From assembly GCF_035594765.1 (NCBI RefSeq), contig NC_085842.1:48212782-48276781 (forward strand): DNA of 64,000 nt, read 5' to 3'. Shown piece by piece: positions 1 through 42,009 of the stretch (position 1 is its first letter; each line of letters opens with the position of its first letter). Both the position numbers and the translations under genes were made by a program. The DNA is from Anolis carolinensis. Its lineage: Eukaryota. Below the pieces are notes generated by a model that worked only from the letters and a program-made list of their open reading frames with translations, was not told the origin of the DNA and searched no databases.

Positions 1-470
1 AGAGGGCCAACATGCCCAACAACAACACAAGTGAAGCCACGCTCCCAAAAAAGTGGCAAACTTGTAAAACATGATGTTTTGGTGCTTAATTTGTAAAATC
101 ATAACATAACGTGACATTTAATAGGCTTTTCCTTAATCCCTCCTTATTATCCAACATTTTTGCTTCTCCAACGTTCTGCTGGCCCGTTTATGTTGGATAA
201 GCGAGACTCTACTGTAGTACCAACTTGACTCATACCTAGTTTTAACTAGCTTTCTCAGAGTTATCCTCCCTAAATCCCAATTCTAATATGTAAAATATTT
301 TATATTTACACCACCTGATTAATTTAAATAAATACACTAAAATCGCTATGCAACTTAATGAAACCAGAATGGTACAGTGGTTTAAGTACTGTACTACAAC
401 TCTGGAGATCAGGGTTCAAATCCCCATTCAGCCATAGAAACTCACGAGGAGAGGTGGGTAACAAATAAAA

Positions 471-527
<57 letters not shown>
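471..527. repeat. (ATT)n microsatellite
   Basis: Direct reading. Confidence 0.97.
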
Positions 528-528
<1 letters not shown>

Positions 529-2299
529 CTCAATCTCAGAAGAAGCAATGGCAAACCCTTTTTGGACAAATATTCCATGATGCCAAGAACACCACTGTAA
601 TGGGGTAACACGTCAACACAGAAGAAGCTGAGAAAGTTTTCATGGACACATTTTCCTTATGTCTTGACAAGAACACACTGTGATAAGGTCACCTAAGGGC
701 TGCCATAAGTCAGAAATGACTTGAAGATACACAGCATCAACAAGACTTATTTCAAATATGACACTAGCCCAGGATTTGCTTGATATCATTGTTGCTCATT
801 TGACAGCCTGAATTTACTGTAGGGAAACAAATCATTATTTATTTTGTGCTGTCATTATGTCCTGGTTTATTCTCTGACATTCAGGAAAGGTATGAGACTT
901 TCCTCTGCTATATCATACCTCTAACCACTGTTATTGCCACTGATAAGATCTGCTATCACCACTGTTAAAATCTTCTGTCAATGTCTTTCTCCCACCATGC
1001 TCTTACTCCTGAGGCAAAGCTCCTTACAGAGTTCTTCATATTCTCTTCTGAAGAACAGATCTACAAACCTAGTCATTTTCTCTTCACACAAAACTCTGCA
1101 CTATTTATGATTAAGCAGAAAAGCACAAACTCCAGCATAAATCATGATGGAATCCCATTGCTTCTGTAATGGAAAAAGCTACATGGTTTATTTAACACTA
1201 TCCTTTTGCTTACTATTTTGCATCTTTCACATGTTTCTGCATCTTTTTTGTTTAGAGAGAGAAATGCATTTTTAAAGAGAAAGTTCACAGTATCCTAGAC
1301 AACCAATATGTTTATGAACTTTACAGTTAACAATCATTCTTCCTGCAAGCTTCCCTCCCTGTTTTTTTTAAAAGATATATTAGCTGAAACCAGAGACTGC
1401 AGCTGAATAGTTAGGCAATGCAAAGCATGAAAGTGGGGGAAATGCCTGGTTTTTATGGAGATTTGTAGGCATTCAATGATAAGTTGAAACAGAATATGCA
1501 CACGTGAAAGTTGTCCTGCAAAACCTCAGTTGACTTATACATGGGTCAATATACAGGCGTTCCAAGGGTTACAAATAAGACAGGTTCTGTAGGTTTGTTA
1601 TTGCTGAATTTGTAAGCCGGAAAGAGTAAGTGTTACGTGTAACTCCAACAAAATATCTTTTAGATTTAGATAGCATAGGAAAGGGTTAACACCTTTGTGG
1701 GGTTTGCTTTGCTCTCCGTGCCCCTGTTCAGAAGATTTTACCTCAATTTCTGTCCCTGTGATAATTAGATTTTGAAAAATTTGGCTTGTTGTAGAAACAA
1801 GGATGGGTAAGAAAGCTTCAGTAGAGAACCTTTTCCTCATAATAACTCTTTCAGAAGTGAATTTCCCTTTCTAGTGGTAGATTTCATCTCACTTCCTGTT
1901 GTCTCATCCCCATTTGTAACTAGGAGTCACATATAACTTGGATGTCTGTAACTCAGGGATTGCCTGCACCAGAATAGGGACCCAGTGCAAAGGTGAGGGG
2001 GAGGCGAGAAGTACTTCCACCTCATTGCTCTTCCCTTGCCCAACCTGGGGGAACACAGGCAGCCCTCCTTCCCTTCTGATCTTCTTTCTTGTTCTGCAAA
2101 AATGTTGGGGAGCTGTTTTGTGTGCTTGAGAAAGAGCAATGGGCAGTGCCCATTTAAATAAAGGATTAAGTGTTCACATGGCATCCCAATTTTAGGAGGT
2201 AGGGGCAGAGATGTAAACTTGAAAATAATCAAAACCACAAGTTTTGTGAGACCTATGAATGTGGAGAGCCAACTGTAATAATGATAATGATTAATAGTA

Positions 2300-2952
2300 A
2301 ACTACTCTGGGACTTCCGAATTAAGACTGACAAGAGTTTTGGAGCACAATACTCCTGACCTCTCAATCATGAAAAAAAACAAAGTATGGATCGTCAATGG
2401 ATCCCAGGCAACAGCAGAATTGAGGAGAAGCAACTGGAAAAGCTTACACAATATGAGGATTTAAAGATAGAACTGCAAAGACTCTGGCACAAGCCAGTAA
2501 CGGTGGTCCCAGTGGTGATTGGCACAGTGGGTGCAGTGCCTAAAGACCTTGGCCTGCACTTGGAAACAATTGGCGCTGACAAAATTACCATCTGTCAGCT
2601 ACTCGGATCTGCACGCATTATTCACCAATACATCACACAGTCCTAGACACTTGGGAAGTGACCAACATGTGATTGAATACAAAAGCCAGCATAGTGAACT
2701 TGTTTGCTGTGTACTATTTTTGTTGTGTATCAAATAATGATGATGATGATGATGATGATATATCAATTGGTGCTGACAAAATTACCATCTGTCAACTGCA
2801 AAAGGCCACCCTACTCAGATCTGCACGCATTATTCACCAATAAATCGCACAGTCGTAGACACGTGTGATTGAATGCAAACGCCAGCATAGTGATCTTCTT
2901 TGCTGTGTACTACTCTTGTTGTGTATCAAATAATAATAATAATAATAATAAT
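2300..2952 (+). mobile_element. R4/Dong-like non-LTR 3' end with restriction-like endonuclease remnant; 3' end present twice
   Basis: NTPDL...IPGNSRIEEKQLEKLTQYEDLKIELQRLW..VVPVVIGTVG resembles the RLE C-terminus; copies end in (TGA)n at ~2760 and (TAA)n at ~2952. Confidence 0.8.
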
Positions 2953-2989
2953 GCTGATATATCAATGATTTAAAAATATCCTTACATAC

Positions 2990-3141
2990 CTGAAGACATT
3001 TGAAAACTCCTGATTTCTGATTTCCAAAGCCATAGGTACAAGGAGAACACAAAGAGCTCTCTTTGTTCTCCTCATACAGAGTCTGCTCTATTTCCCAATC
3101 AAATTCTTCCTCTTCTTCTACGTCCTCATCATTTTCAGCAC
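2990..3141 (-). CDS. SHQ1: SHQ1 coding exon 4 (gene continues beyond the left edge of the window)
   Basis: (G)[50 protein letters not shown] contains the conserved [10 protein letters not shown] and YGFGN motifs; acceptor tttgattcag|, donor CAG|GTATGT. Confidence 0.93.
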
Positions 3142-3624
3142 CTGAATCAAAGACGGGCATTAAAAAAACAACTAGTCTTCCTACTAGAAAATTCTCTACA
3201 TTTAAGAGAACAATTCATGCAGGAAATCAAATTAAGCTTTCAATAAAAACCGTATGTAGATACCTAACAGCACATTGTAGTAGAAGAACTAGAATTATGC
3301 TGGTTCTACAGTTTCTGGATCATCTAACATCTGCACACATTAGAAGTCCTTCTGTAAACAGTTGGCCTATATCCACGGAGTCTGCATCCACTAATTCTAT
3401 TATCCATGGCTTGAAAATATATATTCCCAAGGAAGCAAACCCCAGCAGATACCAAAGGCCCACTGTGCAGGTGTATGAAAAAAGTATATGAATGAACATG
3501 ATACTTTTTAAAAAAAAATCTTAAGATTCTATAAAAGATATGGTTTTATAGAAAAATCAAGACAGAAACAAATACTGCATTGAATAATACTGGACAAAAG
3601 TCACCATTATTACACAGCCAATAC

Positions 3625-4310
3625 AGAATCATAGAAAGGCTGAGTTGGAAGGAACCACAAGGGCAATCTAGTCCAACCTCCTGCCATGTTGGAATAAACA
3701 ACTGAAGCACTCTTGAGAGTTGGCCATCCAATTTCTATTTAAAGACCTCCAAAGAAATACTGTTCAAGAAGGTCTTCATAATGTTTAGGTGGAATCTTTT
3801 TTCTTGTAGTTGGGATTCACTGGATTCTGTTGCAAGCTTCCTCCATCTCCTGTATTATATCCCTTCAGATATTTAAAAATGCTTTCTCCAAGCTAAACCC
3901 AGCTCCTTTAGTCTTTCTTGTAAGGCTGTTTCTAGACTTTTGATCACCTCGGTTGCCCTTCTCTGGACCTGCTGGGTCAGCTTGTTAATTAACAGCTTGT
4001 TAATACCCAAAACAGGGCTCAATGTTCTAGGTGAGGTCTGACCAAAGAAGAAATGAGTGACATAATACTTCTGTTGACTTCCCCTAAAATCAGAATGGCT
4101 TCTTTGTCCAATGCACCAGACAGCTGATTTATTTATTTTATACTCCACCTTTCTCCCAGGATGAAGATTGCCTGTGATCTACTAAGAATCCTAATCCTTT
4201 TCACATGTGCTGCTTTCATGACAATAGTCACTCATCCTATATTGGAGCATATCATTTCTGCTGGTTTAAATTTGGAACCATAAACTTATCCCTGTTGAAA
4301 TGAATGCTAT
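3625..4310 (-). mobile_element. CR1 LINE 3' fragment, degenerate
   Basis: agaatcataga tail signature and QVQRRAT..IKSLE..LKELG remnant. Confidence 0.75.
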
Positions 4311-4352
4311 ATGAAACTACAAAAACTGGTTTTTATTTAAAAGTGTACAAAC

Positions 4353-4475
4353 CCATCTCCTCTATTAAAGGTTTTGTTGAACTGGATTTCTTTGGTGCAA
4401 GTAGAGCCGTCAACATGTCTAACCCATCAAACTTCTCTCCAGGAGTCTCCTTGGGAAGCCGTATTGTAAATATCC
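4353..4475 (-). CDS. SHQ1: SHQ1 coding exon 3
   Basis: (G)[40 protein letters not shown]; acceptor tttttattcaag|, donor G|GTTTGT; 123 nt, phase 1/1. Confidence 0.93.
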
Positions 4476-5260
4476 CTTGAATAAAAAGAATTATTTTTAG
4501 TGAAGATATTTCATGATCTAAGGACAAGCCATTTTCATATTCTAGTAAGCTGTCAATGTTTCAAAAAGTAAGAGCAAGCCACACTATGTTAACAATCCAG
4601 GGGCAGGCATGCAAGTCAGATTTCCCCAAGCATTAATGCTTTCACAAAGAAATCAGCAAATCAAAACAGAGGGAATGCAAGCTCCTAAGTATCTGCTGTA
4701 ATGTGCAAAAGAAGAATTCATGTATCCCTCAAGTGGAAAGATGCAGAAGTCATTTCCACACACAGAGTTCATATATCTCATGAAGTTTTCCCTCCTAAAT
4801 ATAACAAAAGCATAAATTATTTATGCTTTTCTCTCTGCATTTCCCATATTGAGAGAAATCACCCTAACTTAAATACATCTTCCAAATAACTTACTGGATC
4901 AATCTTCCTCAAATATGCAGTTTGGAGGGGAAATGGCGTAGATTAGGAGGGATGTAATACAGAAGCATTCTTCTTAAATTCCTAATCTGTCAGACAACAT
5001 GTTCCAATAGATAAGACTGTGTTTTAAGCTATCTGAGTGAAACATGGGAACTATCCTCTTCCTCCGCCAAGTGAACATAAAGCATTTTAAGTATGTTTCA
5101 CATATCAGTGAAGAGAGATGTTTCAAAGCAAACTACATCTAACAGGAAGTATATCAAGCCATATTTAATGGGAGCTGAAGCAAATTTATACAGCCGCAGT
5201 ATGACACATCAGAATGGGGTGAACAGCACTGCAAAATACAGTTTTAAAAGCACATAAAAC

Positions 5261-5322
5261 CTGAGTCATCGTATGTTGCTTTCTCTCTTCCATCTTCGAT
5301 AATCCTTCCAGGAAGAACCAAT
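5261..5322 (-). CDS. SHQ1: SHQ1 coding exon 2
   Basis: Acceptor ttttttttgcag|; reads (R)LVLPGRIIEDGREKATYDDS(G), similar to human [22 protein letters not shown]; donor CAG|GTTTTA (weak); phases 2/1 fit the neighbouring exons. Confidence 0.88.
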
Positions 5323-5729
5323 CTGCAAAAAAAAAAGATAAATAGTTATTCTATCATCATGTATCTGGTAAAAACAAAAAAAACAAACCAAATTGCATAT
5401 ACAATATAATGGGAAAGGTTCCAAATTACCAAGTTGTGCAACTCGAGACGTGGCCAACACAGTAGGAATTAAAACAGAAATGGGCAGAGAATATGACATT
5501 AGATTACCCAGAGATAGTTTCCACAGCTGACTCAGGAACATCACAAACTGAAGACCCATCAACTATGAATTCCTGACCAGTTTTTCTTCCACTTTACCAG
5601 CAGTTAAGCAACACTAACTATCCATAAGACTTGCTAAGCATGAGTGCCAACAAAACCTGCTGTAATAATGAAAGCAGCATGCCAAAGGGCACCCAGTTAT
5701 ATTGTAGATACTAGTGTGCTGCTAGCTCT

Positions 5730-6545
5730 ACAACTTGTATAAGCTGCCCTTGAAGACGTCCCGGAAACTACAACTGGTCCAGCTTTCGGCAGCCAGATTA
5801 TTAACTGGAGAGAATTACAGGGAGCGGTCTACCCCTGTTCAAGGAGCTTCATTGGCTGCCATTTATTTTCCGAGCCCAGTTCAAGGTGCAGGTTATTACC
5901 TATAAAGCCCTAAACAGTTTGGAACTCACCTACCTTCGAGACCGCATTTCCCCCTATGAACCTGCACGGTTTCTTCGATCATCGGGGGAGGCCTTCCTCT
6001 TGCTCCCACCACCTTCAGAATCGCGGTTGGTGGGGACGAGGGAGAGGGCGTTCTCCATGGTGGCCCCCCAGCTCTAGAACTCACTCCCTAGGGAGATTAG
6101 GCAAGCCCCTATCCTTCTAATCTTTAGGAAGACCCTAAAAACTTGGTTCTTCCAACAGGCCTTTGGTGAATGATCCTCATCCTCATGTTAGGGCTCGCCC
6201 TGGTGATCATTAATATATCTGTTGCACTTTATTCTACTCCTTCAGTCAGAAATAGTTCCCATGCTTACCTCATCCCTGTGATAAGATTCACAGGTTATCT
6301 AATTCATTTTAGTTTACATTCCTCACTGTATGCACTTTATGGCTCAGTCATTTTTATGCACTTTCATGTTTTTACCCAATTCATGTTTATTTTTGGTATG
6401 TTTTTACTATGTTTCATTGATCTGTTTTTACTTCGATGTGTTTTATTACAATGACTGTAACTACTTGGGCTTGACCCTGTGTAAGCCGCCTCGAGTCCCT
6501 TTGGGGAGATGGAGGCGGGGTATAAAAATAAAGTTATTATTATTG
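5730..6545 (+). mobile_element. L2 LINE 3' fragment
   Basis: KLQLVQ..AARLLTG / LHWLP / FKVQVITYKAL...LRSS ORF2 C-terminus; 3' end tgtaagccgcctcgagtccc...(tat)n. Confidence 0.85.
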
Positions 6546-7502
6546 TATAATAGAGCTGAGTGAAAGCTGTACATAAACAAAGTATATTTTGTAATGACCA
6601 TCCACAGAAATTCCTAGCTGTCAACAGTAAGAAAACACTTGGTAAATTCAAACAAAATGAAGTACAACAGTGAATGTTGGGCTCATGTGTTCTTCTTTAA
6701 GTCTTCATGTACAAGAAGAAATCAGAAATGTCTATTTATGGCTGACAACAAATTACAGCTTCCAAATTGTTTTCAAATATGAGATAGTATTGTTTGTATA
6801 ATCCACAACATCAAACTCAAGGACCGCAGGCCAAATCTGGCCTGTCATTTCATTGCTAGATGCTGTACTACTACTTCTGTATTCCTCATCATTAGACCTC
6901 ACGACTAAAGCTAATGGGAGTTGTGATACAATAACATCTGGAAGGCTGCTTTTTGTTTTATTTGGTCAGGATAGTGGGGTTTGAATTTAGATACACGCCT
7001 CGTGAATAGGATGTCTGACTTAAAAAATGTCATTTTACCTTTTCCCAACCTCAGAGCCATAAGCGCTGTTGGGGTGAAGTTCCCATTATCCACAGTCTGT
7101 ATGGCAAGTAAGCAAAAGTGATGTGAGTTGTTGTTCAATAACATCTGGGGACTCGAACTGAGGTTTCCCTCTGTATCCATGGATTCTCCTTCCATAGATT
7201 TAATGGCTCTTTGAAGGCAACCATTAGGATGATGCGGCTCTCGATGAAAATGAGTTTGACACCGCTGGTACAACCCATACCTTTTTAATAAACCAGGGTT
7301 GATTTCCAATGCTTGCTGCATTTCATTCAAGTAAACACCACAGACCATTGTTACATCTGAGTTTAGTTCATGTGTGATGGAGTCTATCATTTATTATGGA
7401 TTTTCTGTCATGGATCTGCATGAAAAACTCATTCCTAGAAATGCATATTAATGTACCAGACAAGACAGTAAAAACTGAATTTGACCAAGTGATATTACAT
7501 AC

Positions 7503-7645
7503 CTGAGAAAGTAAGGTTTTGCATAAAATTTGAACTCTGTTCCTTCAAAATAGACATCAAACTCTGAAACTCGTGCATATGGTACTCTGATCATTATGGT
7601 AAGAAAATCAGGATCTTGACTCAGCTCAAATGCCGGTGTTATCAT
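7503..7645 (-). CDS. SHQ1: SHQ1 (H/ACA RNP assembly factor), first coding exon, CS domain N-terminus
   Basis: Translates [48 protein letters not shown], nearly identical to the SHQ1 N-terminus as recalled; ATG at 7645-7643; donor CAG|GTATGT after 7503 (143 nt, phase 2). Confidence 0.96.
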
Positions 7646-8442
7646 GTTGAATATTCTTGGAAAATCAGCAACACCTCTTGAAAAACTGTGTCATGGAAAT
7701 AAAAGATCATCTCAGAACATGTAAATAAGTATCAATGGCAATGAACATCTCAATGTGATAACAATGTTTGTCTAAGTAAAGCCTAAGATGATTAACTGGT
7801 GCCTCAGTTTGATCAGGAAATTTAATTTGAGGAGTTGAGATTAAAACCAGGATTTTTGAATTATTCCAAAGGTCAATTTGTTTCTGGAGCATTATTATCT
7901 TGGGATATTAATAAGGTATGCTATTATTCCACCTTTATTCTGCCATGGTATTCAAGGGAAGTTTTATTTCATCCAAGCTCTCAGAAATCATGAACAAAGA
8001 AACCCTCATCACAGCCTACAGTACCATCACCAACCTCACTGATCCAAACTCCCTCTTCTGCATAATTTGTTAATTCCCAGCAGGAAAAAAGAAATGAAGG
8101 GGAATGGCAAATACAGTAATATGCAGCAATGCTTCACCTGACCAAAATTTTATTGCTGAAACTTTATGGCATTGAATTTTTGCTGCAGTTTGGACAGGTT
8201 GCTTACCTGTAACCGTGTTTCTTCGAGTGTACTCTGTGAATTCACACTAATGGAGAGACTGCGCCTGTGCGGGCTCCAACGGAAACTCTTCCCAAGCTGA
8301 AGTTTTAAATTTTGGCGGTAGCCACGCCCCCCATCCCCGGAGGGCATATAAGGCAGCCCTGGGCATCCGCTCTCCAGTTCCTGCGCCGCCAAGGCAACGA
8401 GAAAGGAAGAGGGTTTGCCAGAGGGGAAGGAAGGGCGGGTTT

Positions 8443-8537
8443 GTGTGAATTCACAGAGTACACTCGAAGAAACACGGTTACAGGTAAGCAACCTGTCCTT
8501 TTTCTTCGTGTACTCTGTGAATGCACACTAATGGAGA
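8443..8537. repeat. DIRS internal complementary region (ICR)
   Basis: 8443-8498 is the exact reverse complement of 8192-8247; 8499-8537 is a variant copy complementary to the expected outer end of the left ITR. Confidence 0.93.
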
Positions 8538-8931
8538 CTAGCACGCTTAGGTCCCGGATGGTGGGACAAGGCAAACCTTGACAACAAGTTGATGTCCAAA
8601 CACATCTTTATTAATCACAAATAACATGGTCCGAAGGAACCATAGAAGTAAACACAAGCATAACGCCGAGAAGGAACTCGGTAGGTCATGGAATAAACAA
8701 TTTCAAATAAGAGTGAGCGAGTACAGAGCATCATTCCCGATGGGGAGAGAGGCAATAGTACATAAGGCACAATTGTTTGAGAGAAAAACAGTGCAAACGT
8801 GAACATAGAAGCAGCATAACGAGATGACCAAACATAGGGGCATCTACAGCGAAAAGACCCACGAGGAGGAGCCTCTAGGGGGTCGTGTGGAAGGTAAGTT
8901 CTGAGGGGTAAAAGTAAGGAGTCAGAGAACC

Positions 8932-11787
8932 TCAGGACAGACAGGATGATAAGACCGATCTAGCGAAGGCTGAGTCTTTCAAGGCTTTTTGGTCTATCTT
9001 GTAGTGAGACACGAAAGTAAGGGGGTTAGACCAAATTGCTGCCTTACAAATAGAGTCCAGGGGAATGCCCCTTAGAAAGGCAGTTGACGTGGAAAGGCCT
9101 CTCGTCGAACGCGGACGGACGGACGGACGGGGGAGGTGGACGCTTGGCCAGTTCGTAAGCCAGTTCAATAGCCTGTGCAATCCAATGAGACAACCTTTGC
9201 GAGGAAATAGGATTGCCCAGTTTATCTGGGGCATGGGCTATAAAGAGTCTCTGAGTCTTTCGAATGTCCTTCGTACGGTCACAATAGAAGAGAAGTGCCC
9301 TATGCACGTCGAGGAGATGTAGTCTCCGTTCAAGGGGAGACGAGGGGTTTGGAAAGAAAGCAGGAAGAACAATGTCCTGGTTGAGGTGGAAGGCTGAGAC
9401 CACCTTGGGAAGGAAGGTGATGTCCGGGCGGAGAATGGCTCGGTCATGGTGGAAACGGAGATAAGGTTCATCGACCCTAAGGGCCGCCAGTTCTGAGGGC
9501 CTGCGAGCCGAAGTTATAGCCACCAAGAAGGCTACTTTCCACGAGAGAAGACGTAGGTCGGTCGAGGCTAGAGGTTCGAAGGGAGAGGAAGTGAGCTGGG
9601 AAAGTACGAGCTCGAGGTTCCAGCCCGGCGTAGGCGGCTGGGACGCGGACAGATATTGTTGTATCCTTTCAAGAAGGTTTTGACAAGGTGATCAGAGAAT
9701 AAGGATGGTTTACCATGTTGCTGGAAACACCACGAAAGAGCGGCCAAGTAAGATTTCATAGAGGCAAGAGAAAGCTTTTGGTCTGCAAGAGTCATAAGAA
9801 AGTCCAACACTATCGGTATCGAGGTCAGGAAGGCAGCAATTCCTCGGGACCGAAGAAAGGCGCGGAAGCGGGAGATTTTATAAGTGTATGATCTGGTTGT
9901 AGCCGGCTTGTGAGCTGCGCGGAGAACCTCCTGAAGGTTTTGCGGGAGGGAGGTTAGGCGAGAATTCTCCATGCAGTGAGATGTAGAGAGGGGAGATCCG
10001 GGTGCAGGATCTGGCCGTTTTCTCTGGACAAGAGGTGTGGCAGAAGAGGCAGAGTGAAAAAGGTCCCTCTGGAGAGGTGAAGAAGGGCTGGGTACCAAGG
10101 CTGTCGAGGCCAGGCCGGGGCTATCAGGATCGCCGACGTCGATATCGACCGGAGTTTCTGCAGGACCTTCGGTATCAGAGGGAAAGGCGGGAAGAGGTAG
10201 ATCGGTTTCGATGACCAGTCTAGAAGAAAAGCGTCTCCCAGGCAGCCTGGAAAGGAGGCCGGAGGAAGTCTCGCCCCGTATCGAGGTAGTTGTGCGTTCT
10301 GGGGAGAGGCAAAGAGGTCCAGGGTGGGGTATCCCCATTTGTGGAAGAGAGAAAGAAGAGTTTCGGGATCGAGCATCCACTCGTGGCAGGAACTCGTCAT
10401 CCTGCTGAGGGCATCTGCCAAGCTGTTTTGGATCCCGGGAAGATGAACTGCCAGGAGCTGTATATTGTGGGCTATGCACCAGGCCCACAGCTGAGAGGAG
10501 AGAAGCATCAGCTTCCTCGAACCCGTGCCGCCTTGTTTGTTGATGTAGAAGACTGCCACTGTGTTGTCTGATTGAACGAGGACAGTTTTTTGGTAGATCA
10601 GGCGGGAGAAGGCTTTCAGAGCCTTGAAGATGGCGAGAAGTTCCAGAAAGTTTATGTGATTGGTCCTCTCGGAACGAGACCAAAGACCTTGTACGGTGAG
10701 ACCGTCCATGTGGGCTCCCCAGCCGTAGTTGGAGGAGTCCGTGGTTATGGTAATCGAGGGGGGAGTCGGATGGAACGGGAGGCCCTTGCAAACATTGGAG
10801 AGGGACTTCCACCAGCAAAGCGACTGACGAACATGGAGCGGGATGGAGAGGAACCTCGAATTGAGGTGGCGGGATGGCTTGAAAACGTCTATAAACCATC
10901 TCTGCAGGGTCCGAAGGTGGAGCCTGGCAAACGGGGTCGTTAGAACTGTAGAGGCCATGTGGCCCATGAGTACCTGGATGGACCGGGCTCGAACTCTCCG
11001 ATTGTTTTCGCAGAGAGTGATTTGTTGGCGAAGAGCGAGAAACCTATCGAGCGGGAGAGAGACAGTTTGAGAGATTGAGTCGAACAAGGCGCCGATGAAG
11101 CGGATTTTGTTCGACGGAAAGAGGTGAGATTTGTCGGGATTTAGCTGGAGACCGAGAGAGTCTAGAAGACTGAGGGTGGTGTCCACGTGACGTCGGAGGA
11201 GGACAGGGTCGGACCCGACCAGAAGCCAATCGTCCAGATATGGAAAAACTGTGATTCCCTGGAGCCTGAGGTGGGCAGCGACCACAGCGACGACCTTGGT
11301 GAAAACCCTTGGGGCCGTAACGAGGCCGAAGGGTAAAACGGTGAACTGGTAGGTTTGGTCGAGGACCTTGAAGCAAAGGAAGCGTCTGTGGGTTTTCCGG
11401 ATCGCTACGTGGAAATAAGCGTCTCGTAAGTCTATGGACACGAAATAGTCTCCACGCTGAAGCATAGGAAGGATGGAGGCGATGGACACCATCCTGAACT
11501 TGGTTGGGCGTATGAAGGTATTGAGCACACGCAAGTCTAAGATGGGGCGGAGCCTCCCTCCCCTCTTCGGGACCGTGAAGTATCTGGAGAAGAAGCTTTG
11601 AGGGTCCTGTACCGATGGAGAAGGCTGAATAGCCCCTTTGGCGAGGAGGATGTCGATTTCGGCGAGAATCTCCTGAGAAGGGTTGGAGAGAAGGATCTGA
11701 CCCGTGGGCGGGAGCTCTTCGAACTCTAAGGCATAGCCCTCCCGAACAATTCGGAGAACCCAAGCATCCGAAGTAATAGACTCCCAT
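8932..11787 (-). pseudogene. DIRS1 tyrosine recombinase ORF, disrupted
   Basis: One frame from ATG 11787, with TAG at 11046-11044, a 1-bp frameshift near 9645 and a 4-bp (CCGT) expansion near 9112-9130. Repaired it reads WNLELVL...PFEPL...AITSARRPSEL...RSTR...W...TFVSHY; the catalytic HxxR reads RSTR. Confidence 0.9.
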
Positions 11788-12215
11788 TGATGGAAGAAAG
11801 GAGCCAGGCGGTCTGAAAAGAGGCCATGAGGTTGATGTGGTAGAGGGGAGGGATGTAGAGGAATGAGTCCTGCATCGATACCGGAGAAAGAGTCTTGATA
11901 GAGAGAGGTGGCGTCAGGTACGCCGATGGGGCTGACCAGAGGTGGGAGTGGTTCGACCGCGTTGTTTTGGCGGATGGGCGGAGCGGCGAGGCTGTTGGCG
12001 GTTCTGGTTGTTTGAAACCGAGGGACGCCTGAAGGATTGGTGACGGTAAGACGGGGGCGGAAAGCGTCGGAAGCGCTGAGGAAACCATCTGGTGCGGTGC
12101 GTTTGAGGCTGGTCACCACACTTGGTAGCCAGAACCTTAAAATTATGGTTAGTTTTGAGTTTATCGTCGGTGCCAGAATTGAAAAGACCCAAAGCGTCGA
12201 AAGGAAGGTCTTCAA
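9954..12215 (-). CDS. DIRS1 pol: reverse transcriptase - RNase H - adenine-methyltransferase-like domain, intact frame
   Basis: RT motifs LRPILDLR, SIDLRDAYFH, LPFGL..APRVF, YLDD; RNase H TTDSS..GWG, HINFLELLA, SDN, NSLADALSR; MT-like LDLFAS...DAF..DW...YLFPPFPLI. The listed start is TTG, not ATG. Confidence 0.95.
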   Translation of the reverse strand: MKTFLSTLWVFSILAPTINSKLTIILRFWLPSVVTSLKRTAPDGFLSASDAFRPRLTVTNPSGVPRFQTTRTANSLAAPPIRQNNAVEPLPPLVSPIGVPDATSLYQDSFSGIDAGLIPLHPSPLPHQPHGLFSDRLAPFFHQWESITSDAWVLRIVREGYALEFEELPPTGQILLSNPSQEILAEIDILLAKGAIQPSPSVQDPQSFFSRYFTVPKRGGRLRPILDLRVLNTFIRPTKFRMVSIASILPMLQRGDYFVSIDLRDAYFHVAIRKTHRRFLCFKVLDQTYQFTVLPFGLVTAPRVFTKVVAVVAAHLRLQGITVFPYLDDWLLVGSDPVLLRRHVDTTLSLLDSLGLQLNPDKSHLFPSNKIRFIGALFDSISQTVSLPLDRFLALRQQITLCENNRRVRARSIQVLMGHMASTVLTTPFARLHLRTLQRWFIDVFKPSRHLNSRFLSIPLHVRQSLCWWKSLSNVCKGLPFHPTPPSITITTDSSNYGWGAHMDGLTVQGLWSRSERTNHINFLELLAIFKALKAFSRLIYQKTVLVQSDNTVAVFYINKQGGTGSRKLMLLSSQLWAWCIAHNIQLLAVHLPGIQNSLADALSRMTSSCHEWMLDPETLLSLFHKWGYPTLDLFASPQNAQLPRYGARLPPASFPGCLGDAFLLDWSSKPIYLFPPFPLIPKVLQKLRSISTSAILIAPAWPRQPWYPALLHLSRGTFFTLPLLPHLLSRENGQILHPDLPSLHLTAWRILA

Positions 12216-13992
12216 TAACTTGTCTGGAGGAAGAAGACAAACCCGACGACCTCAGCCAGGCGTGGCGACGAATGGCAATGGCATGGGCGATCATCTTACC
12301 GGCCGTGTCACCTGTATGTTTAGCCACCTGAATTTGATGATGGGATAACGAGTCGGCTTCTTGTTGAAGGGTGGACAGTACAGATCGGTCCTCGTCAGAC
12401 AACTTCGAGAAAAAAGTCTGTGCTTTCTCCCAAAGGATCTGCTGGTATGCACCCATACAGGCCCCATAGTTCGCCATTCTACAAAGTAGGAGGGCCCCAG
12501 AGTAGAGCTTTCGGCCCACCGCGTCAAACCTCTTGCCTTCTCTATCTGCAGGTGTATTTGATTCACGACCGGAGGTCTGTGAAGCTTTGACGACCATGGA
12601 ATTCGGGTCGGGATGGTGTTTAAGCCACTCCAAGGCATCGTCATCGGTACGGTACCAGGATTCGATTCTCTTTGAGGTAGGAGGAATCGAGGAAGGGGTC
12701 TTCCAGGATGCTTGGATGACATCCAGAAGGTAAGGCAGAAACGGCAACAGTGTGGCTGGAGGGGCTTGAGCTTGGACCCGTTTGAAAACCGGGTCAGAGA
12801 CCGCCTTAGAAGTTTGCTTGATCGCTAAACCCAGAGCATCGGCCATCCTCACCATCTGGTCCGAGAAGGCTCGAATATTGTCCGTAGGCGAGGGAGGATC
12901 CACCTCGTATGCGTCGTGAGGAGGAGAGAGATCGAGACCAAGGGATATCACCGAGGCCGAGAGAGCGGAGTCAGGACGATCAATATCAATCTCATCGTCC
13001 TCAGCCCCTTGAGGGGACTGAGGGGGAGATGACAGCACAGTCTCTGGTGGAGGCAAAGCCTCAAGAGCAGGAGCGATCTGTGGCCGAGTCTCTTTGGAGG
13101 CCGAGGCTTGGGCAGCCCGAGCCAAGCGGGTGGTTTGTCTACCCCGTTCCGGTGTCGAGGTCGGGGGAAAAAGCTGCTGGCGGGACGGACGATGCACGGC
13201 AGCAGGCCGAGGCGATGGCACCCTGACCACTGTTTGGGTGGAGTGGTGGGGTGAGTCCTGTAGTTCGCCATCGGAAAGTTGTCGAGGAGAGGGTTGTCGA
13301 GGCCGCTGGGCGGGAGCGATCGGAGAGGATCTTCTAGAAGATGTCGCCGAAGAGGAAGGGGCGTCTTTCTTAGAAGAGGCAGAAGAGGAAGAGCGTTGGG
13401 TCGCCCTCTTTTTAGCAAGCGGCTGTTTCGAAGGAACCCTCAGAGATTTTCCCAGCGTCGGAGGGACCATTGCTGAGTCGGATTGGGTCCAACGGGCTTC
13501 CTCGTGGGCCCTCTTAAAGGCGATTTTCATCGCGGAGGTCGACGGAGGAGACCCGAGATGGGATCGAATCGAGGACACGGAGGCCACAGAGCTCGACGTC
13601 GAGGAGGGACCCACTCTACCGGAACGAGTCGACATAGTGGCCGTGGTGAGCGTGCACGGCGGTTTGACGGGCTTAGCTGTTTTGGATGCCCTGGATGTCC
13701 TGGACGAGACTGAGGGAGCCTTAGCTGCCGGTGCCGACATCGCTCTCGGGTTCAGCGTCGACGTCGCGCCCGATGTCGACGGAGTGGGCTCGGGGGCGAG
13801 CGATTTCTCGTAGAGCGCTGCTCTGAGCCTCGCGGCCCTATTCTTCCTTGCCTGAGCCGTCAGGGCTAGACAGAAACGGCAGGTACCGACGACATGGGCC
13901 TCTCCGAGACAGAAGAGGCACTTGGCGTGGCCGTCAGAATCAGGGATTTTAGCGGCACACTGAGTGCAGCGTTTGAAGCGAGTAGCAGACAT
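11914..13992 (-). CDS. DIRS1 ORF1 gag-like protein, 692 aa, intact
   Basis: ATG start; N-terminal Cys/His finger CTQC...H..CLFC....H....CRFC, Ser/Pro-rich linker, helical C-terminal region of the kind related to the LAP2alpha domain (RRHAWLRSSG...EDLPFD..GLF). Confidence 0.88.
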   Translation of the reverse strand: MSATRFKRCTQCAAKIPDSDGHAKCLFCLGEAHVVGTCRFCLALTAQARKNRAARLRAALYEKSLAPEPTPSTSGATSTLNPRAMSAPAAKAPSVSSRTSRASKTAKPVKPPCTLTTATMSTRSGRVGPSSTSSSVASVSSIRSHLGSPPSTSAMKIAFKRAHEEARWTQSDSAMVPPTLGKSLRVPSKQPLAKKRATQRSSSSASSKKDAPSSSATSSRRSSPIAPAQRPRQPSPRQLSDGELQDSPHHSTQTVVRVPSPRPAAVHRPSRQQLFPPTSTPERGRQTTRLARAAQASASKETRPQIAPALEALPPPETVLSSPPQSPQGAEDDEIDIDRPDSALSASVISLGLDLSPPHDAYEVDPPSPTDNIRAFSDQMVRMADALGLAIKQTSKAVSDPVFKRVQAQAPPATLLPFLPYLLDVIQASWKTPSSIPPTSKRIESWYRTDDDALEWLKHHPDPNSMVVKASQTSGRESNTPADREGKRFDAVGRKLYSGALLLCRMANYGACMGAYQQILWEKAQTFFSKLSDEDRSVLSTLQQEADSLSHHQIQVAKHTGDTAGKMIAHAIAIRRHAWLRSSGLSSSSRQVIEDLPFDALGLFNSGTDDKLKTNHNFKVLATKCGDQPQTHRTRWFPQRFRRFPPPSYRHQSFRRPSVSNNQNRQQPRRSAHPPKQRGRTTPTSGQPHRRT

Positions 13993-14026
13993 GAGAATCC
14001 GAAGTGAACCTTGCGGCGGAAAAAAA

Positions 14027-14080
14027 GGAACTGGAGAGCGGACGCCCAGGGCTGCCTTATATGCCCTCCGGGGATGGGGG
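14027..14080 (-). promoter_or_regulatory. DIRS left-ITR Pol II core promoter (mirrored on + in the right ITR, ~8320-8381)
   Basis: CCACGCCCC GC box, CATATAAG TATA-like box and Inr-like CCAGTT about 29 nt downstream, immediately before gag. Confidence 0.6.
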
Positions 14081-14164
14081 GCGTGGCTACCGCCAAAATT
14101 TAAAACTTCAGCTTGGGAAGAGTTTCCGTTGGAGCCCGCGCAGGCGCAGTCTCTCCAAAGGGGT

Positions 14165-14776
14165 CCCCAAAGGGGACTCAGGGCAGCTTACATGGGGCCA
14201 AGCCCGAATAAAAACAATAGCAATATAAAACACAACAATAGACAAAAAACATGCACAATTATAAAATTTAAACATTAGCCAGTAAAAACAAATGACAAGA
14301 GCTAATAAAAACATGGATTAAAATGGAGAGGTTATAAAAGTAGACTGGGTAAGGTGCACCATATAAATATTGTAAACACGAGGTGACTGATAAAGTGCTG
14401 CAAATTCTTGGAAGTGCAAATTGGGATGGGAATAGACCCTGTGTCTTTATCAAGTTGACATATGTAAAAAGTGTAAACCGGTACAGAAATGGTCACAGAT
14501 ACAGACTGCTATGGGGATGAGCAATCTTTAACTAAAGGCCTGAGTAAACAGCCAGGTTTTCAAGCTCTTTCTGAATGCTACCAGCGTGGGGGCTTGCCTG
14601 ATTTCCCTGGGGAGCGAGTTCCAGAGCCGGGAGGCCACCACGGAGAAGACCCTCTCTCTCGTCCCCACCAACCGCGCTTGTGACGGAGGTGGGAGCGAGA
14701 GGAGGGCCTCCCCGACGAACGAAGAGATCGTGCAGGTTCGTAGGGGGAGAGGCGAGCACTAAGGTAGGAGGGTCCC
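14165..14776 (-). mobile_element. L2 LINE 3' fragment lacking its tail, abutting the DIRS left ITR
   Basis: Similar to 5950-6510 on the opposite strand (VGTRERVFSVVASRLWNSLP); stops after gagtcccctttgggga. Confidence 0.85.
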
Positions 14777-14799
14777 TGATTTACATTCTATTGCTATTA

Positions 14800-15354
14800 C
14801 AGTAGAGTCTCACCTATCGAACTTAAACGGGCCGGCAGGATGTTGGATAAGCAAAAATGTTGGATAATAAGGAGGGATTAAGGAAATGCCTATTAAACAT
14901 CAAATTACATTACAATTTTACAAATTAAGCACCAAAACATCATGTTTTACAACAAATCAACAGAAAAAGCAGTTCAATACCCGATAAAGTTATGTAGTAA
15001 TTACTGTAGTTACAAATTTAGCACCAAAACATCGCAGTGTATTGAAAACATTGACTAGAATCATAGAGTTGGAAGAGACCTCAGGGGCCATCTAGTCCAA
15101 CCGCCTGCCAAGAAGCAGGAAATCGCATTTAAAGCACCCTCAACTACAAAAACGTTGATTACTAACAAATTGACTGCAAATAGATAGAATTGCATAAAAT
15201 GAACTTACAGTAACAACAATGTTGGAAATTAAATCCATAAAAAGTTCAGCCCTTGCTGCCTAGAGAAACAGCTGTGGATCCGGGCAGGAGGCAGACTGTA
15301 TTGAATAATCCAGAACGTTGGATAAACGAATGTTGGATAAGTGAGACTCTACTG
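14800..15354. mobile_element. Tc1/pogo-type MITE (TIR CAGTAGAGTCTCAC, TA TSD); other copies at 1-214, 18764-19071 and ~40186-40524
   Basis: ta|cagtagagtctcac ... gtgagactctactg|ta; carries a nested CR1 tail at ~15057-15140. Confidence 0.88.
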
Positions 15355-16642
15355 TATATGTCAATTCTGTATCTGTGTTTGGTACAAGTTTTTTATACAT
15401 GTTTTGTGTTTTTATCTATGTGATGTATTGTATTTTTATTGTCATATGTTTGTTATTCCTCCCGCCTTGAGCCATCAAGAAAGACTGGTAATAAATAAAA
15501 TGTATTACATTGTTATTATTATATTAAACTATGTAACACAATTTGTTCCTGGTTTATAAATGTTATTTTCTAATTGGTTCTATCATGAAAACATGGAAAA
15601 AGTTTATTAAACTGCAAAAACTTTGTTTTTGCAGGAAGGCTTGCAACACATTTTGCTATAGTTTTTCAATGAATATCTCATAGAGTCTCAATCAATTCAA
15701 CATAGTTTGTATCAGCCATAAAAACAAAGTTTCTGGAATGTAACAACTACTTTCAAAGTATGTACTACACAACTAAATGGGAAATAACACTTTCAAACCA
15801 GGAACATAATGTTTTTCAAATTATGTTACATAGTGATCTGAATTCAAATCACACAAGCAAAGGCTGCTGGTAAACTTAATGATGCGTGGCATTCTCTCAA
15901 TGCTCAACATAGTATTCACTGTTATTTCTTCAATTTCAAGATGCATTTTACCCCCATATAAACATCTCTAAAAATGGGATGCATAGTCCCAGACCTACAA
16001 GTCAATTCTAAATAACATGGTGTCAGTGCTCAACATTTCATTTACTATATTCCTTCAATTCTAAGATGCACTTCCCTTCAGATAAGCATCTCTAAAAACA
16101 GGGTACACCTTAGAATTGTTGGTGCTTTTTATATATAAAGCTTATTTTCATGATGGTGGTACTGAGATTAATGTGCATTTTACGATCGATGGTGCCATAG
16201 AATCTAAGGCTCCTTCTATACTGCCATAAAAATCCAGATTATCTGCTTTGAACTGGATTATATGACAGTTGAGACTCATATAATCCAGTTCAAAGCAGAT
16301 AATCTGGAATTATTTACTTTGATAAACTGGATTATATGGCAGTGTAGAAGGGGCCTCCTCTAGTAATTTGTTAATCTATGATTCTGTTTGCTTACTGTTT
16401 TGTACATATGTTCTGGTATGCATCTTATTTTGCTCTATGTTTCCTGAGAAGTTGTGGGGGGTGGGGCAGCAGACCACATGATCTGATCTGAGACTGCTCA
16501 GACCTCAGACTCTATTTTAGATTCTTCTTAGGGCCCTTCAGCATAGCCATATAACCGAGAATATCAAGGCAGAAAATCCCATAATATCTCCTTTGAACTG
16601 GGTTATCGGAGTCCACATTGCCATATATTCCAGTCCAAAGCA

Positions 16643-16821
16643 ACAACAACAACAATTCTTTATTGATTAGTCACTTTTGACCATATCAAAACATGTAAAA
16701 CATACAATACGCACACACTTACGCATACATACAATAAAACCATGTAAAGATACAAAACATCCTGACCTGCGGCCTAATAACCCACTCCTAGACAAATACA
16801 GAGTAAAAAGGTTAAAATTAG
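16643..16821 (-). mobile_element. 3' end of a non-LTR retroelement with AATAAA and (TTG)n tail, fused to the U6 fragment
   Basis: Minus strand ends ...tcaataaagaattgttgttgttgttg; the whole insert is flanked by cagtccaaagca / cagttcaaagca. Family not identified. Confidence 0.65.
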
Positions 16822-16823
16822 TC

Positions 16824-16861
<38 letters not shown>
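16822..16861 (+). pseudogene. U6 snRNA 5' fragment (about nt 5-44), retrocopy
   Basis: TCGCTTCGGCAGCACATATACTAAAATTGGAACGATACAG matches U6 exactly; it stops inside the ACAGAGA box and has no PSE/TATA or terminator. Confidence 0.93.
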
Positions 16862-18004
16862 TTCAAAGCAGATAATGTGGGATTTTATTCAGTTGTGTAG
16901 CAGGGGCCTTAGACTTTGGACAGCTAAGACAAACGCTTGTTTGATGTTTTTAAGAAAGATGCCCTGTGACATCTGCACAGAGAAACTATCTCAGACATAT
17001 CTGTAACTGGACAGATAAGTTATGTACCTGTACTATGCTGAACACATGAAGATTGTGAGTAAATCAAATATGTTATTTTGCCAAAGCCTACTTCATTTTT
17101 GTCTCTTGAGTGCATGACATAAAAGTAGTTGTTTTATGGGAGAGTATATATATATATATTTGGGCACTGAAAAATACTTCTGAAACTCTGCTATTTTGTG
17201 CACTGGCATATTCCCTGTTCCTAACAGATCAGAGACAATAGGTTAAATCTAACAACTGGAAACATTGCCTTGCATATTGCATTTGGTTGTATACCATATG
17301 AGAAGATTCTACTCAAACAAACAGGTTGTTGGCTCTTCTCTGGAAGATCAAACTTTTCCAAATGGTTATGAATAGCATTTTCTAAAAGAAATACAGCAGT
17401 ATTTGCTTCAAACTTTGCAGTTTAGAAACACAACATGGTTTAATCTACCGAAAAGAGAAATTAAATGTCACCATAGCTCATTACTGTTATCAGAACCAGC
17501 ATGCTTCTGAGGATAAAAGTTTAGGAAACTTCTCCTGGCCTACAGCTACAGCTTCACTTTCCAATTAGTCCCATTCTTACAAGTTAGTTCTAATTGGCTG
17601 TCAGCATTCAAATACTTAAGGCAGTAATCCCAAAGGCTGTTCAGCCTACAAACTAAACTAAACCAGGCAGGGGCAAACTTGGGCCCTCCAGATGTTTTAG
17701 ACTTCAACTCTCACAATTCCTAACAGCCAAATTGTAGCAACTAAAGTCCAAAACACCCGGAAGGTCCAAGTTTGTCCAGGCCTGATCTATACTACAGATT
17801 GAATGCAGCTTAACACTGCTTTGATTGCTTGAATCTGAAGACGCCAAACCCATGCATATGGAGGGCTGACTGTAATGTGAAGAGGCCTGGAGAGATTGAG
17901 GGTGCATTTCTACACTGAATAATCAATCTAGTTTGACATGGCTTTAACTGCTATGGAGTCATGGGAGTTGTAGTTTAACAGGGTCTTGGGAGTGGTAGTT
18001 TAAC

Positions 18005-19205
18005 AAGGGACCACCAAATGCAGCATTGCCCAAACACGAATCAAGGAACATGAAAGGCACCGCAGACTAACTCAACCAGAGAAGCCAGCCATAGCAGTGC
18101 ATTTGATGAACCAACCTGAGCACAGGATATTTTTTGAGAAGACAGAAATGCTAGACCACGCTAACAACCACAATGCCAGACTATACAGAGAATCAACTGA
18201 AATCCACAAGCATGTGGACAATTTCAACAAAAAGGAGGAAACCACGAAATCAACAAAATCTGGCTACCAATATTAAAAAAAAACCTCTAAAATCATGACA
18301 GTAAATAAAGAACAACACTCAGAAAACAGAGGAATTCCAGATGAGAAACAATCAGGGCCAGCTAACGCCTCCCAATAAAGGATTCCCCCAGGCAGGAAGA
18401 AGCCAGGCTTTGAAGCAGCAAGGCTATTCAATGCTACTCAAGGTGGCCAATTGCACCATTCACACTTGCCTCAAGCAGACAAGAGTACAAAGGCTTTGAA
18501 AAAATGATCCTGGGATATTTATTTTAGCATAGAGAAGCAGATTTACAAATGGAAGAAAATTAATCCGGGGGGAAGATTCCTCCCCGGATGCAACCTGGTA
18601 TAGATATGGATAGAAGTCAAACAATTTTTACTTTTTTTCTACTTTTTTTTCTCCTGCTTACCCTCTCCCCCCTTGAATTTCCTACTTTTCTATAACCATA
18701 AATGTTCCCCCACTTTTATTGTTATCCTTTGAAATTTTAAATAAAATATCAAGAAAATAAATACAGTAGAGTCTCACTTATCCAACATAAACGGGTCGGC
18801 AGAATGTTGGGTAAGCAAATATGTTGGCTAATAAGGAGGGATTAAGGAAAAGCCTATTAAACATCAAATTAGGTTATGATTTTACAAATTAAGGACCAAA
18901 AATCATGTTATACAACAAATTTGACAGAAATAGTAGTTCAATACGCTGTAACGCTATGCAGTAATTACTGTATTTACAAATTTAGCACCAAAATGTCATG
19001 ATGTATTGAAAACATTGACTACAAAAATGCATTGGATAATCCAGAACGTTGGATTAAGTGAGACTCTACTGTATATCAACCCCACTGGCCCAGTTTCCAA
19101 AAAAACTCACAACCTCTAAGGATGTTGCCATAGATGTGGGCGAAATATCATGAGATAATGCTTCTGTAACATGGCCATATAGCCTAGAAAACTCACAGCA
19201 ACCTA
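18005..19205 (+). mobile_element. Penelope-like element remnant (GIY-YIG C-terminus plus pLTR), interrupted by later insertions
   Basis: Reads QTRIKEHERHRRLTQPEKPAIAVHLMNQPEHRIFFEKTEMLDHANNHNARLYRESTEIHKHVDNFNKKEE from ~18030; the pLTR tail resumes at 19072-19205. Confidence 0.85.
18764..19071. mobile_element. Tc1/pogo-type MITE nested in the Penelope remnant
   Basis: Same TIRs and TA duplication. Confidence 0.88.
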
Positions 19206-19313
19206 GGTCTATTGTTGTTGTTGTTCTTATGTTTTTTTTATACTCGCTTACTCTCTCTACAAAACAGACTCGGGAGGGGCTTACAGTAAAACCACATGCA
19301 ACACAATTTTAAA

Positions 19314-19315
<2 letters not shown>

Positions 19316-19359
<44 letters not shown>

Positions 19360-19395
19360 CATACATACATACACATACATACATATATATGTATA
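19316..19395. repeat. (TA)n/(TACA)n microsatellite
   Basis: Direct reading. Confidence 0.95.
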
Positions 19396-19425
19396 CAAAC
19401 ATCAAAAACAGAATTAAAACGTACA

Positions 19426-19625
19426 GGGTTGTTATGTGTTTTCCGGGCTGTATGGCTATGTTCCAGAAGCATTCTCGCCTGACGTTTCGCCCACATCTAT
19501 GGCATGCATCCTCAGAGGTTGTGAGGTATATTGGAAAAGCTAAGCAAGGGAGGCTTATATATCTGCGGAAGGTCCAGAGTGGGAGAAAGAACTCTCTCAC
19601 CCGGGACCTTCTACAGATATATAAA
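19426..19625 (-). mobile_element. Penelope pLTR fragment, inverted relative to 19072-19205
   Basis: Reverse-complement similarity to 19105-19205; contains the hammerhead motif. Confidence 0.8.
19478..19518 (-). ncRNA. Minimal type I hammerhead ribozyme motif (Penelope-associated)
   Basis: CCU-CUGAGGA-U-GCAUGC-CAUAGAU-GUGGGC-GAAAC-GUC-AGG: core boxes intact, stem I CCU/AGG, palindromic ACGU stem III, stem II with one A.G mismatch. Confidence 0.75.
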
Positions 19626-19703
19626 CACCGCTGGAAACGTCTTTAGAGAGAGGAAAAAAAACACCATAACTACAAAGCACCAAAACACAACCCTCCGCCT
19701 TAC

Positions 19704-20030
19704 CCACCACTGAGGCAACTGAGCCAGCAACTCCACGCGCTGCTTCACGCGCTTCGGGCTCCTTGACTCCGCCCCGCAGCTGTAGGTCCGGCCCTCCTCG
19801 GCGATGCGCGCATTCCTATTGGCTGCGACAACTGACAACTCGAGCATTCTCCTCCTGTGTCTAACTAGGAATCAAAATCATTGGCGAATCTCATCCAATC
19901 ATGAGTCAGATAGAGAATGACAGTAGGAGGGGAAGAGGTTGGCGGAAAAAGGGAGAACGTGAGTGATACGACTGAAGGGAGGGGGAGTGAGGAACTACGT
20001 CATTGTATTTCTGCGCATGCGCACATCCAC
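19704..20030 (-). promoter_or_regulatory. SHQ1: Probable SHQ1 promoter and non-coding first exon (small CpG island)
   Basis: Non-repeat CpG cluster upstream of the SHQ1 ATG; perfect NRF1 palindrome TGCGCATGCGCA at 20012-20023, CCAAT/ATTGG boxes, GC box; minus-strand donor TGG|GTAAGG at 19704/19703; the ATG exon has candidate acceptors (ttttccaag|, tttttcaag|) and no CpG island of its own. Confidence 0.7.
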
Positions 20031-21119
20031 TCCATTCGCCTGACTAAAGAGATTCATTTTGGGTCTACCTTGAAGAATGAAGGCAGTCTGGCTCCACTTT
20101 ATCTGCTTGCTTCAATGCTATGCTGTCATTACAAGGTTTCTAGCCATCTCTGGATCTATCCACACAACCATATAACCCAGAATAACAAGGCAAAATATCC
20201 CACAATATCTGCTTTGAACTGGAATATATGGCACTCAAATAACCCTGTTCAAAGAAGACATTGTGGGATTTTCTGCCTTGATATTCTGGGTTATATGGCC
20301 TTCTGTTTCATACTCCAAACTACAAATTCCATGATTCCACTGAACTGTTCCAAGCAGTTAAAGTGGTGTCAAACTGCATCAGTTCTACAGTGTAGATGCG
20401 CACATGGCCGAGGGGGATTCGAAGATACCTTGCAAGTGTCTTCACCTGTTATTATATTTAATCTTTAAAGTGTGTTCATGTGTTCCTTCTTTTTTGATAA
20501 ATAAGGGTTACCAATAATTCAAAAATTCTGTATAGATTTTCTGTTTTATAGTAGATAGCTCCTTTCTACTCAGGCATTTAAAGAAGAGTATTTTAAAGCT
20601 GGCCCAGGAGGTGCTGAGTAGTGTATTATGTGTTTTAATAGGTTTTTAATGGTTTTAATGGCTTTCACTATTTTTAATAGTCCTGTGTTTAATTCTATTT
20701 TAGTGGTTATATGTCTTAGGTTTTAAATTGCACATTAGTCTCGTTTTTAGTATTCTTAGCTAGCTGCAATCAACCATCAAGAAAACCATTAATACTTATC
20801 AGTGCTGTGTGGTTTGTGTAATCACCATCCAGGCCTCAAACTGGTTCCAGGATTTCCTATGTAATAATCTGAACTGTGAAACTTTCTTCCAATACCGGTT
20901 TGAAACTACATTGAATGGTCAGTATATGAATTATTCCCCTCTTCTCACTCTCAGTCTCCTCTTCTTTTCATTCTCCATCTCTTCTTCTCTGTCTCCTCCT
21001 CCTATTCTTCCTTCTCCTCCTCCTCCTCTCCTTCTCCATCTTCTCTTTTTCTTCTCATTCTCCATCTCCTCCTCATCCTTCTCCTCCTCCTACTCTTCCT
21101 TCTCTTCTTCATCACATCC

Positions 21120-42000: not shown

Positions 42001-42009
42001 GAGAAAAGC

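Follow-up and report, generated by a model that had tools for sequence, protein, structure and literature searches.

DIRS1-like elements and the SHQ1 locus

About 775 DIRS1-like copies, grouped into 42 families, have been counted in the genome of the lizard Anolis carolinensis (Piednoel et al. 2011, PMC3266345). The gag open reading frame (ORF) of a DIRS1-like element gave rise to the LAP2alpha domain. In LAP2alpha (TMPO) and ZNF451-L2a, such a gag ORF was exonized as a large alternative 3' exon and fused in frame with host exons (Abascal et al. 2015, PMC4495291). Here we analysed a DIRS1-like retrotransposon copy located in the first intron of SHQ1 in A. carolinensis. The window is the whole stretch of DNA that was analysed, 64,000 nucleotides (nt) of contig NC_085842.1 (positions 48,212,782 to 48,276,781), and all positions below refer to it unless a copy or assembly is named. 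An earlier note on this DNA, which cited the LAP2alpha precedent, had proposed that the element is positioned to splice into the SHQ1 transcript and could stand at an early stage of domestication. The precedent itself is well founded, as the literature confirms that the LAP2alpha domain arose from a DIRS1-like gag ORF (PMC4495291).

The SHQ1 locus resembles LAP2alpha and ZNF451-L2a in having a sense DIRS gag ORF within a host gene, with an acceptor-like site before the ORF and a poly(A) signal after it. In those two genes, however, the gag-derived exon continues the reading frame of the coding exons upstream of it, the protein is expressed, and the exon is fixed and under purifying selection. 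At SHQ1 the upstream exon gives no in-frame fusion, and the whole element, not gag alone, is still present and decaying. The locus is also similar to the cryptic exonization of intronic transposons in 5' untranslated regions (UTRs) (PMC4495291, introduction), since a sense transposon with splice look-alikes lies in a 5' UTR intron. Unlike those cases, the SHQ1 element shows potential only.

We conclude that the element is most probably an ordinary, decaying A. carolinensis DIRS1-like copy, which lies in SHQ1 intron 1 in the sense direction and is normally removed with the intron. Our verdict is that it has a generic exonization potential and gives no sign of domestication. Taken overall, we regard exonization as a generic possibility and a rather unlikely one. 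The idea of an early domestication, with the element positioned to splice, was not supported: the splice-like motifs are structural sequence of the family that all full copies share, the copy in A. sagrei has no AG at the acceptor-like site, the exon-1 ATG does not share the gag frame, the SHQ1 copy is degenerating, and isoforms X1 and X3 of SHQ1, as annotated, leave the element out.

Under the mechanism that we propose, a DIRS1-like retrotransposon would have inserted sense into the 12-kb intron 1 of SHQ1 and would be spliced out together with it. The pyrimidine tract and AAG before gag would be a conserved leader downstream of a TATA/initiator-like promoter in the inverted terminal repeat (ITR), with no adaptation of the SHQ1 locus. 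The donor-like CAGGTAAGC would be a part of the right extension, constrained by its pairing with the internal complementary region (ICR) used in DIRS replication. The element would be silent toward SHQ1 splicing.

Structure and state of the element

We compared the window copy with two other A. carolinensis copies (L001 and L002) and one A. sagrei copy (L003). All three align to the exact element ends, 14157 and 8192. The features of the window copy are as follows, where a slash within a motif marks the potential splice point, aa denotes amino acids and Inr denotes initiator.

8192..14157, minus strand: DIRS1-like tyrosine-recombinase retrotransposon copy of 5,966 nt, sense to SHQ1 and wholly in intron 1, with ends shared with L001, L002 and L003
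14026..14157, minus strand: left ITR, identical to the right ITR at 130 of 132 positions; the 33-nt left extension of other copies is absent outside it
14027..14061, minus strand: TATAAGG (14061-14055) and Inr-like CCAGTTCC (14034-14027), 29 nt apart, kept in four copies; putative promoter of the element itself
14010..14030, minus strand: acceptor-like pyrimidine tract ending AAG/G, 17 nt before the gag ATG
11914..13992, minus strand: gag ORF, 692 aa, open, with its ATG at 13992; 92% identical to an annotated A. carolinensis LOC protein
9954..12215, minus strand: pol ORF with reverse transcriptase (RT) and RNase H, 753 open codons and no ATG at its head (RVT_1, E 5.7e-23; RT_RNaseH, E 8.7e-5)
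9044..10899, minus strand: putative tyrosine-recombinase (YR) region, broken by a change of frame between the SAM-like part (to 9568) and the catalytic part (9526-9044)
8607..8612, minus strand: AATAAA upstream of the ICR, kept in all four copies
8440..8537, minus strand: ICRs; 8440-8498 pairs with the right extension, and 8499-8537 inversely matches the left terminus of other copies (L001, L002)
8251..8382, plus strand: right ITR with the same TATA/Inr facing inward, antisense to gag and SHQ1; by symmetry a candidate antisense promoter
8192..8250, minus strand: right extension with the donor-like CAG/GTAAGC (8207/8206), read from the sequence

The element stands out by its GC content (0.50-0.57 vs about 0.39 around it) and contains three large minus-strand ORFs. 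With its ITRs, ICRs and right extension, it appears from its sequence to belong to the DIRS1-like elements as published (PMC3266345). Of the 59 nt in the right extension (8192-8250), 58 are complementary to 8440-8498. In line with the A. carolinensis DIRS1-like elements described in the same study, the copy is about 6 kb long, has gag followed by overlapping YR and pol frames with RT and RNase H, and shows no target-site duplication at its flanks. Two traits set it apart from those elements, the lack of the 33-nt left extension and the broken recombinase frame; it is otherwise unremarkable.

In pol, the RVT_1 match lies over the Pfam cut-off and the RT_RNaseH match slightly below it. For the putative recombinase, the only Pfam match was Phage_int_SAM_4 (E 8.5e-5, below the Pfam cut-off), and the catalytic part lies in another frame. 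The recombinase frame also has a stop further upstream, at 11046-11044. In L001 the equivalent region stays open without a break for 1,103 codons. The 33-nt left extension (TTTTCTTCG...CACACTAA) precedes TGGAGAG in the three other copies (L001:5802-5834, L002:5174-5206, L003:6512-6542), and in the window the flank at 14158-14215 is a SINE-like repeat instead (SINE, short interspersed nuclear element). The broken recombinase frame and the missing left extension mark the window copy as decaying.

No Pfam model matched a methyltransferase domain at the end of pol in the general scan, in which no dedicated profile was used. No Rfam families were found in the window. CpG content was considered as an age marker and rejected, as the observed/expected (o/e) CpG ratio is 0.82-0.86 in all four copies regardless of ITR divergence.

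The ICR carries a perfect CAGGTAAG on the plus strand (8481-8488), and the TATA/Inr of the right ITR faces inward (8347-8376, plus strand). The element therefore also has antisense promoter and donor look-alikes.

SHQ1 exons and promoter

The SHQ1 features needed to place the element are listed here.

19708..19847, minus strand: SHQ1 exon 1, counted from its annotated ATG up to the annotated donor, encoding exactly residues 1-46 of XP_062825779.1 and XP_003217839.2
19698..19707, minus strand: tandem exon-1 donors read from the sequence, GTG/GTGGGT (19708/19707, annotated) and TGG/GTAAGG (19704/19703, the one named by the earlier note)
7503..7685, minus strand: SHQ1 exon 2, which contains the canonical ATG (7645) and has its donor after 7503; identified by the SHQ1 CS domain in PDB, with its acceptor placed from annotated proteins
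19685..20152, minus strand: SHQ1 promoter block with a small CpG island, NRF1-like GCGCATGCGC, three CCAAT boxes and a GC box, recognized by CpG o/e and conservation in another lizard

The exon with ATG 7645 encodes the SHQ1 CS domain (PDB 4pbd, E 5.7e-25). SHQ1 database proteins were reached via a representative search with the exon-2 peptide and then word searches. The join of exons 1 and 2 was taken from these proteins, with each exon aligned separately, and coordinates alone served to derive the frames. The window exons agree with the A. carolinensis SHQ1 isoforms at every residue and with A. sagrei less closely. Isoforms X1 and X3 (XP_062825779.1, XP_062825781.1 and the older XP_003217839.2) have the N-terminus MLELSVVAANRN..., and positions 19847-19710 encode residues 1-46 of it. 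The intron interrupts a Cys codon (TG/T), with 19709-19708 on one side and 7685 on the other, and the exon-2 acceptor AG lies at 7687-7686.

The annotated intron 1 extends from 19707 to 7686 (about 12 kb), and the DIRS element lies entirely within it, in sense. Isoforms X1 and X3, those with a readable N-terminus, splice 19708 directly to 7685 and bypass the element. The element is sense to SHQ1 and sits between the ATG exon and a genuine upstream exon, as had been described; these annotated proteins and the conserved promoter block confirm the upstream exon. The upstream exon had also been called non-coding, and this is correct only in part: the exon is real, but isoform X1 has an annotated start ATG at 19847. 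In the same way, the donor site once placed at 19704 exists, whereas the annotated donor is found 4 nt upstream, at 19708/19707. The exon-1 ATG stays in the SHQ1 frame with donor 19708 only; donor 19704 would put it out of this frame.

Isoform X2 (610 aa) begins at the canonical ATG, which points to a 5' exon structure other than that of X1. The tandem donor 19704, 4 nt below the annotated one, may be what sets isoform X2 apart.

The promoter block has a CpG o/e of 0.8-1.0 vs 0.35 for the window. A 505-nt block is 63% identical (E 6e-26) to the CpG island upstream of SHQ1 in an iguanian lizard assembly (GCA_020142125.1), and the NRF1-like, CCAAT and GC-box motifs are invariant between the two. 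The CpG island and the conserved motif block in a second iguanian support its reading as a promoter. In GCA_020142125.1 (L004:1681-5658), the homologue of the promoter is inverted relative to the SHQ1 ATG exon, in a 4-kb piece between two 100-N gaps. A contig placed in the wrong orientation is the probable cause.

In isoform X1, the annotated N-terminal extension of 60 aa has its start ATG amid CCAAT and GC boxes. This extension is absent from other squamate SHQ1 proteins (608-626 aa), so it may be an annotation artefact resembling an upstream ORF.

We also compared four sequencing runs (X1, X4, X13, X15) with the window over 4250-9249. Their contigs are unbroken through exons and introns, which indicates that the runs are DNA. 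At position 7517, the window has T and all four DNA runs (four studies) have A, which would change SHQ1 Lys43 (FYAKPYFL) to Asn. Lys43 is present in the window and in all annotated Anolis proteins.

Splice-like motifs across family copies

The acceptor-like AG at 14011-14010, with 14009 as the next base and the gag ATG 17 nt away, was seen in the sequence as the earlier note had described. In the 5' alignment, the TATA box and Inr-like CCAGTTCC are conserved in all four copies, including that of A. sagrei. The pyrimidine tract TTCCTTTTTTTCCGCCGCA that follows them is invariant in the aligned copies. At the acceptor itself, the A. sagrei copy keeps the tract and reads CACGG, without AG. Thus, the AG is not the conserved part of this site. 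We read the tract as the probable leader of the element's own transcript, with the ITR as a putative promoter. Both ITRs of Dictyostelium DIRS-1 show promoter activity (PMC4482531).

In the sister species A. sagrei, an annotated model (P0005; L003:6001-6111 and about 6790) splices an exon in the flank upstream of the DIRS copy to a weak acceptor (AAAAG) that lies 8 codons into gag. This model is a prediction.

The donor-like CAG/GTAAGC in the right extension is likewise present at 8207/8206. It stands in the correct order relative to the SHQ1 ATG exon, but the distance to the annotated exon start at 7685 is 521 nt, and not about 550 nt to a start near 7660 as had been proposed. In the 3' alignment, ACAGGTAAGCAACCTGTCC is invariant in the A. 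carolinensis copies. The right extension of A. sagrei reads ACAGGTATGTAACCTACC / CAGGTATGT at this site, and its ICR bears the matching change. Since the motif and the ICR change together between species, the motif is held by the complementarity of extension and ICR. Furthermore, CAGGTAAG occurs 2 times in the 64 kb, compared with 2.26 expected, and both occurrences are within the element (one in the right extension, one in the ICR on the other strand). It is not enriched and is merely part of the element.

The family also provides a second sense copy inside a host gene, as L002 lies in a FERM-domain gene.

Coding consequences and the likeness to LAP2alpha

With the exon-1 ATG joined to 14009, the reading frame is 1 or 2 nt off the gag frame for donors 19708 and 19704, as calculated from coordinates only. 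After this join, the ORF ends after 19 or 47 codons and overlaps the gag ATG. The exon-1 ATG is therefore out of frame with gag for both donors, and an SHQ1-gag fusion protein is impossible here.

In Pfam (E up to 10) and in PDB, searches by sequence and by profile gave no match for gag, LAP2alpha included. An AlphaFold2 (AF2) model of gag was unusable, with a predicted local distance difference test score (pLDDT) of 34. The Atlas feature (language-model) search placed gag residues 340-640 near chordate clusters with scores of 0.93-0.94, and 14-22% of the members of these clusters carry PF11560 LAP2alpha. This likeness is a lead that the LAP2alpha analogy is apt, not proof of it. Exact-product look-ups of the exon-2 ORF, the element gag and one flank ORF found nothing.

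Splice-site ranking in intron 1

Several points weigh against an ordinary copy that is removed with the intron. The donor-like site at 8207 ranks first of 656 in the intron, with a score of 11.7. The most exon-like pair, 8380-8207, gives a 174-nt candidate cassette with a plausible acceptor. The splice scores come from a rough position weight matrix (PWM) and are approximate. Gag and pol are still open, and the ITRs are 98.5% alike. Minor chimeric SHQ1-element isoforms may exist, and isoform X2, with its 610 aa and canonical ATG, may have another 5' exon structure.

By the same matrix, the acceptor-like site at 14010 ranks eighth of the 655 AGs in the intron. It had been called strong; the tract and the AG are indeed there, but the site ends in AAG, and five of the seven sites that outscore it also lie in the C/T-rich sense strand of the element. 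This strand holds 25 of the 33 acceptor-like sites of the intron that score at least 8, so that 14010 is a decoy among many. With just 6.8, the real acceptor of exon 2 has a lower score, so such a PWM score does not predict use. The tandem exon-1 donors score 7.9 (19708) and 8.0 (19704).

Alternative explanations

The first alternative is a minor SHQ1 isoform that joins exon 1 to 14009 and ends at the AATAAA of the element (8612) or of the flank (8154), giving a gag transcript driven by the host promoter, similar to the first step in the birth of LAP2alpha. The rank of the 14010 site, the open gag ORF, the conserved AATAAA downstream of gag, the real LAP2alpha precedent (PMC4495291) and the resemblance of gag to clusters with PF11560 all speak for it. 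However, annotated X1 and X3 bypass the element, and AAG is the rarest acceptor type, with a CCAG lying 21 nt upstream. In addition, the AG is not kept in A. sagrei, translation from the exon-1 ATG would run across the gag ATG in another frame with either donor, and the element has its own TATA/Inr-like promoter. We consider such an isoform improbable.

A second possibility, to which we give slightly less credit still, is a cassette exon within the element, likeliest 8380-8207 (right ITR and extension), included between exons 1 and 2. It could represent the 5' structure of isoform X2, whose start at the canonical ATG implies 5' exons unlike those of X1. The acceptor-like CAG/G at 8381 (score 8.0) is paired with the top donor 8207 at an exon-like spacing. 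On the other hand, the tandem donor 19704 explains X2 without an extra exon, and the cassette would bring three upstream ATGs.

It is very improbable that the element serves as an alternative promoter, with transcription starting at the left ITR, reading through and splicing from 8207 to SHQ1 exon 2: despite the TATA/Inr-like promoter, the promoter activity of Dictyostelium DIRS-1 ITRs (PMC4482531) and the strong 8207 donor, a 5.8-kb first exon would be required and the transcript must pass the conserved AATAAA at 8612.

Compared with these alternatives, an ordinary decaying copy removed with intron 1 remains our preferred explanation.

Other observations in the window

A contig of run X1 (1,103 nt, on 7119-8192) ends its match at 8192 and continues with 29 letters that do not fit the element. 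A contig of run X15 extends 27 nt from the flank into the element. The contig of run X1 may represent an allele without the insertion, which would make the insertion polymorphic, because a k=31 contig would break off about 30 nt into the high-copy SINE-like repeat that forms the other flank.

The summed contig depth is very high in each of the four DNA runs at 5753-6086, 6421-6587 and 6922-7255, which points to SINE-like repeats of high copy number in intron 2 of SHQ1. An (ATT)n stretch closes the repeat at 6497-6544.

At 41500-42800, the window has a strong CpG island (GC 0.71) with a plus-strand ORF that encodes the signal-anchor-like MKLYCKAVALALGLAGLLLLYLF, followed by a long CT-rich low-complexity tract. 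This ORF is probably exon 1 of a neighbouring, divergently oriented gene, which we take to be GXYLT2 by synteny.

Implications for intronic DIRS copies

The donor of the extension and the leader tract with its AG, both family-wide, could allow host promoters to drive the expression of sense intronic DIRS copies. In that case, a low-level SHQ1 isoform from exon 1 to 14009, ending at the poly(A) signal of the element, would already exist, which we think unlikely. If it were true, chimeric SHQ1-gag transcripts would represent the earliest stage of the route from a DIRS gag to a LAP2alpha domain.

As it stands, the locus is one of several hundred anole DIRS copies, and its value is mainly cautionary. 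For structural reasons, a perfect 5' splice-site consensus and a strong pyrimidine tract are found at the termini of this family. Thus, every sense intronic copy will look as if it were positioned to splice.

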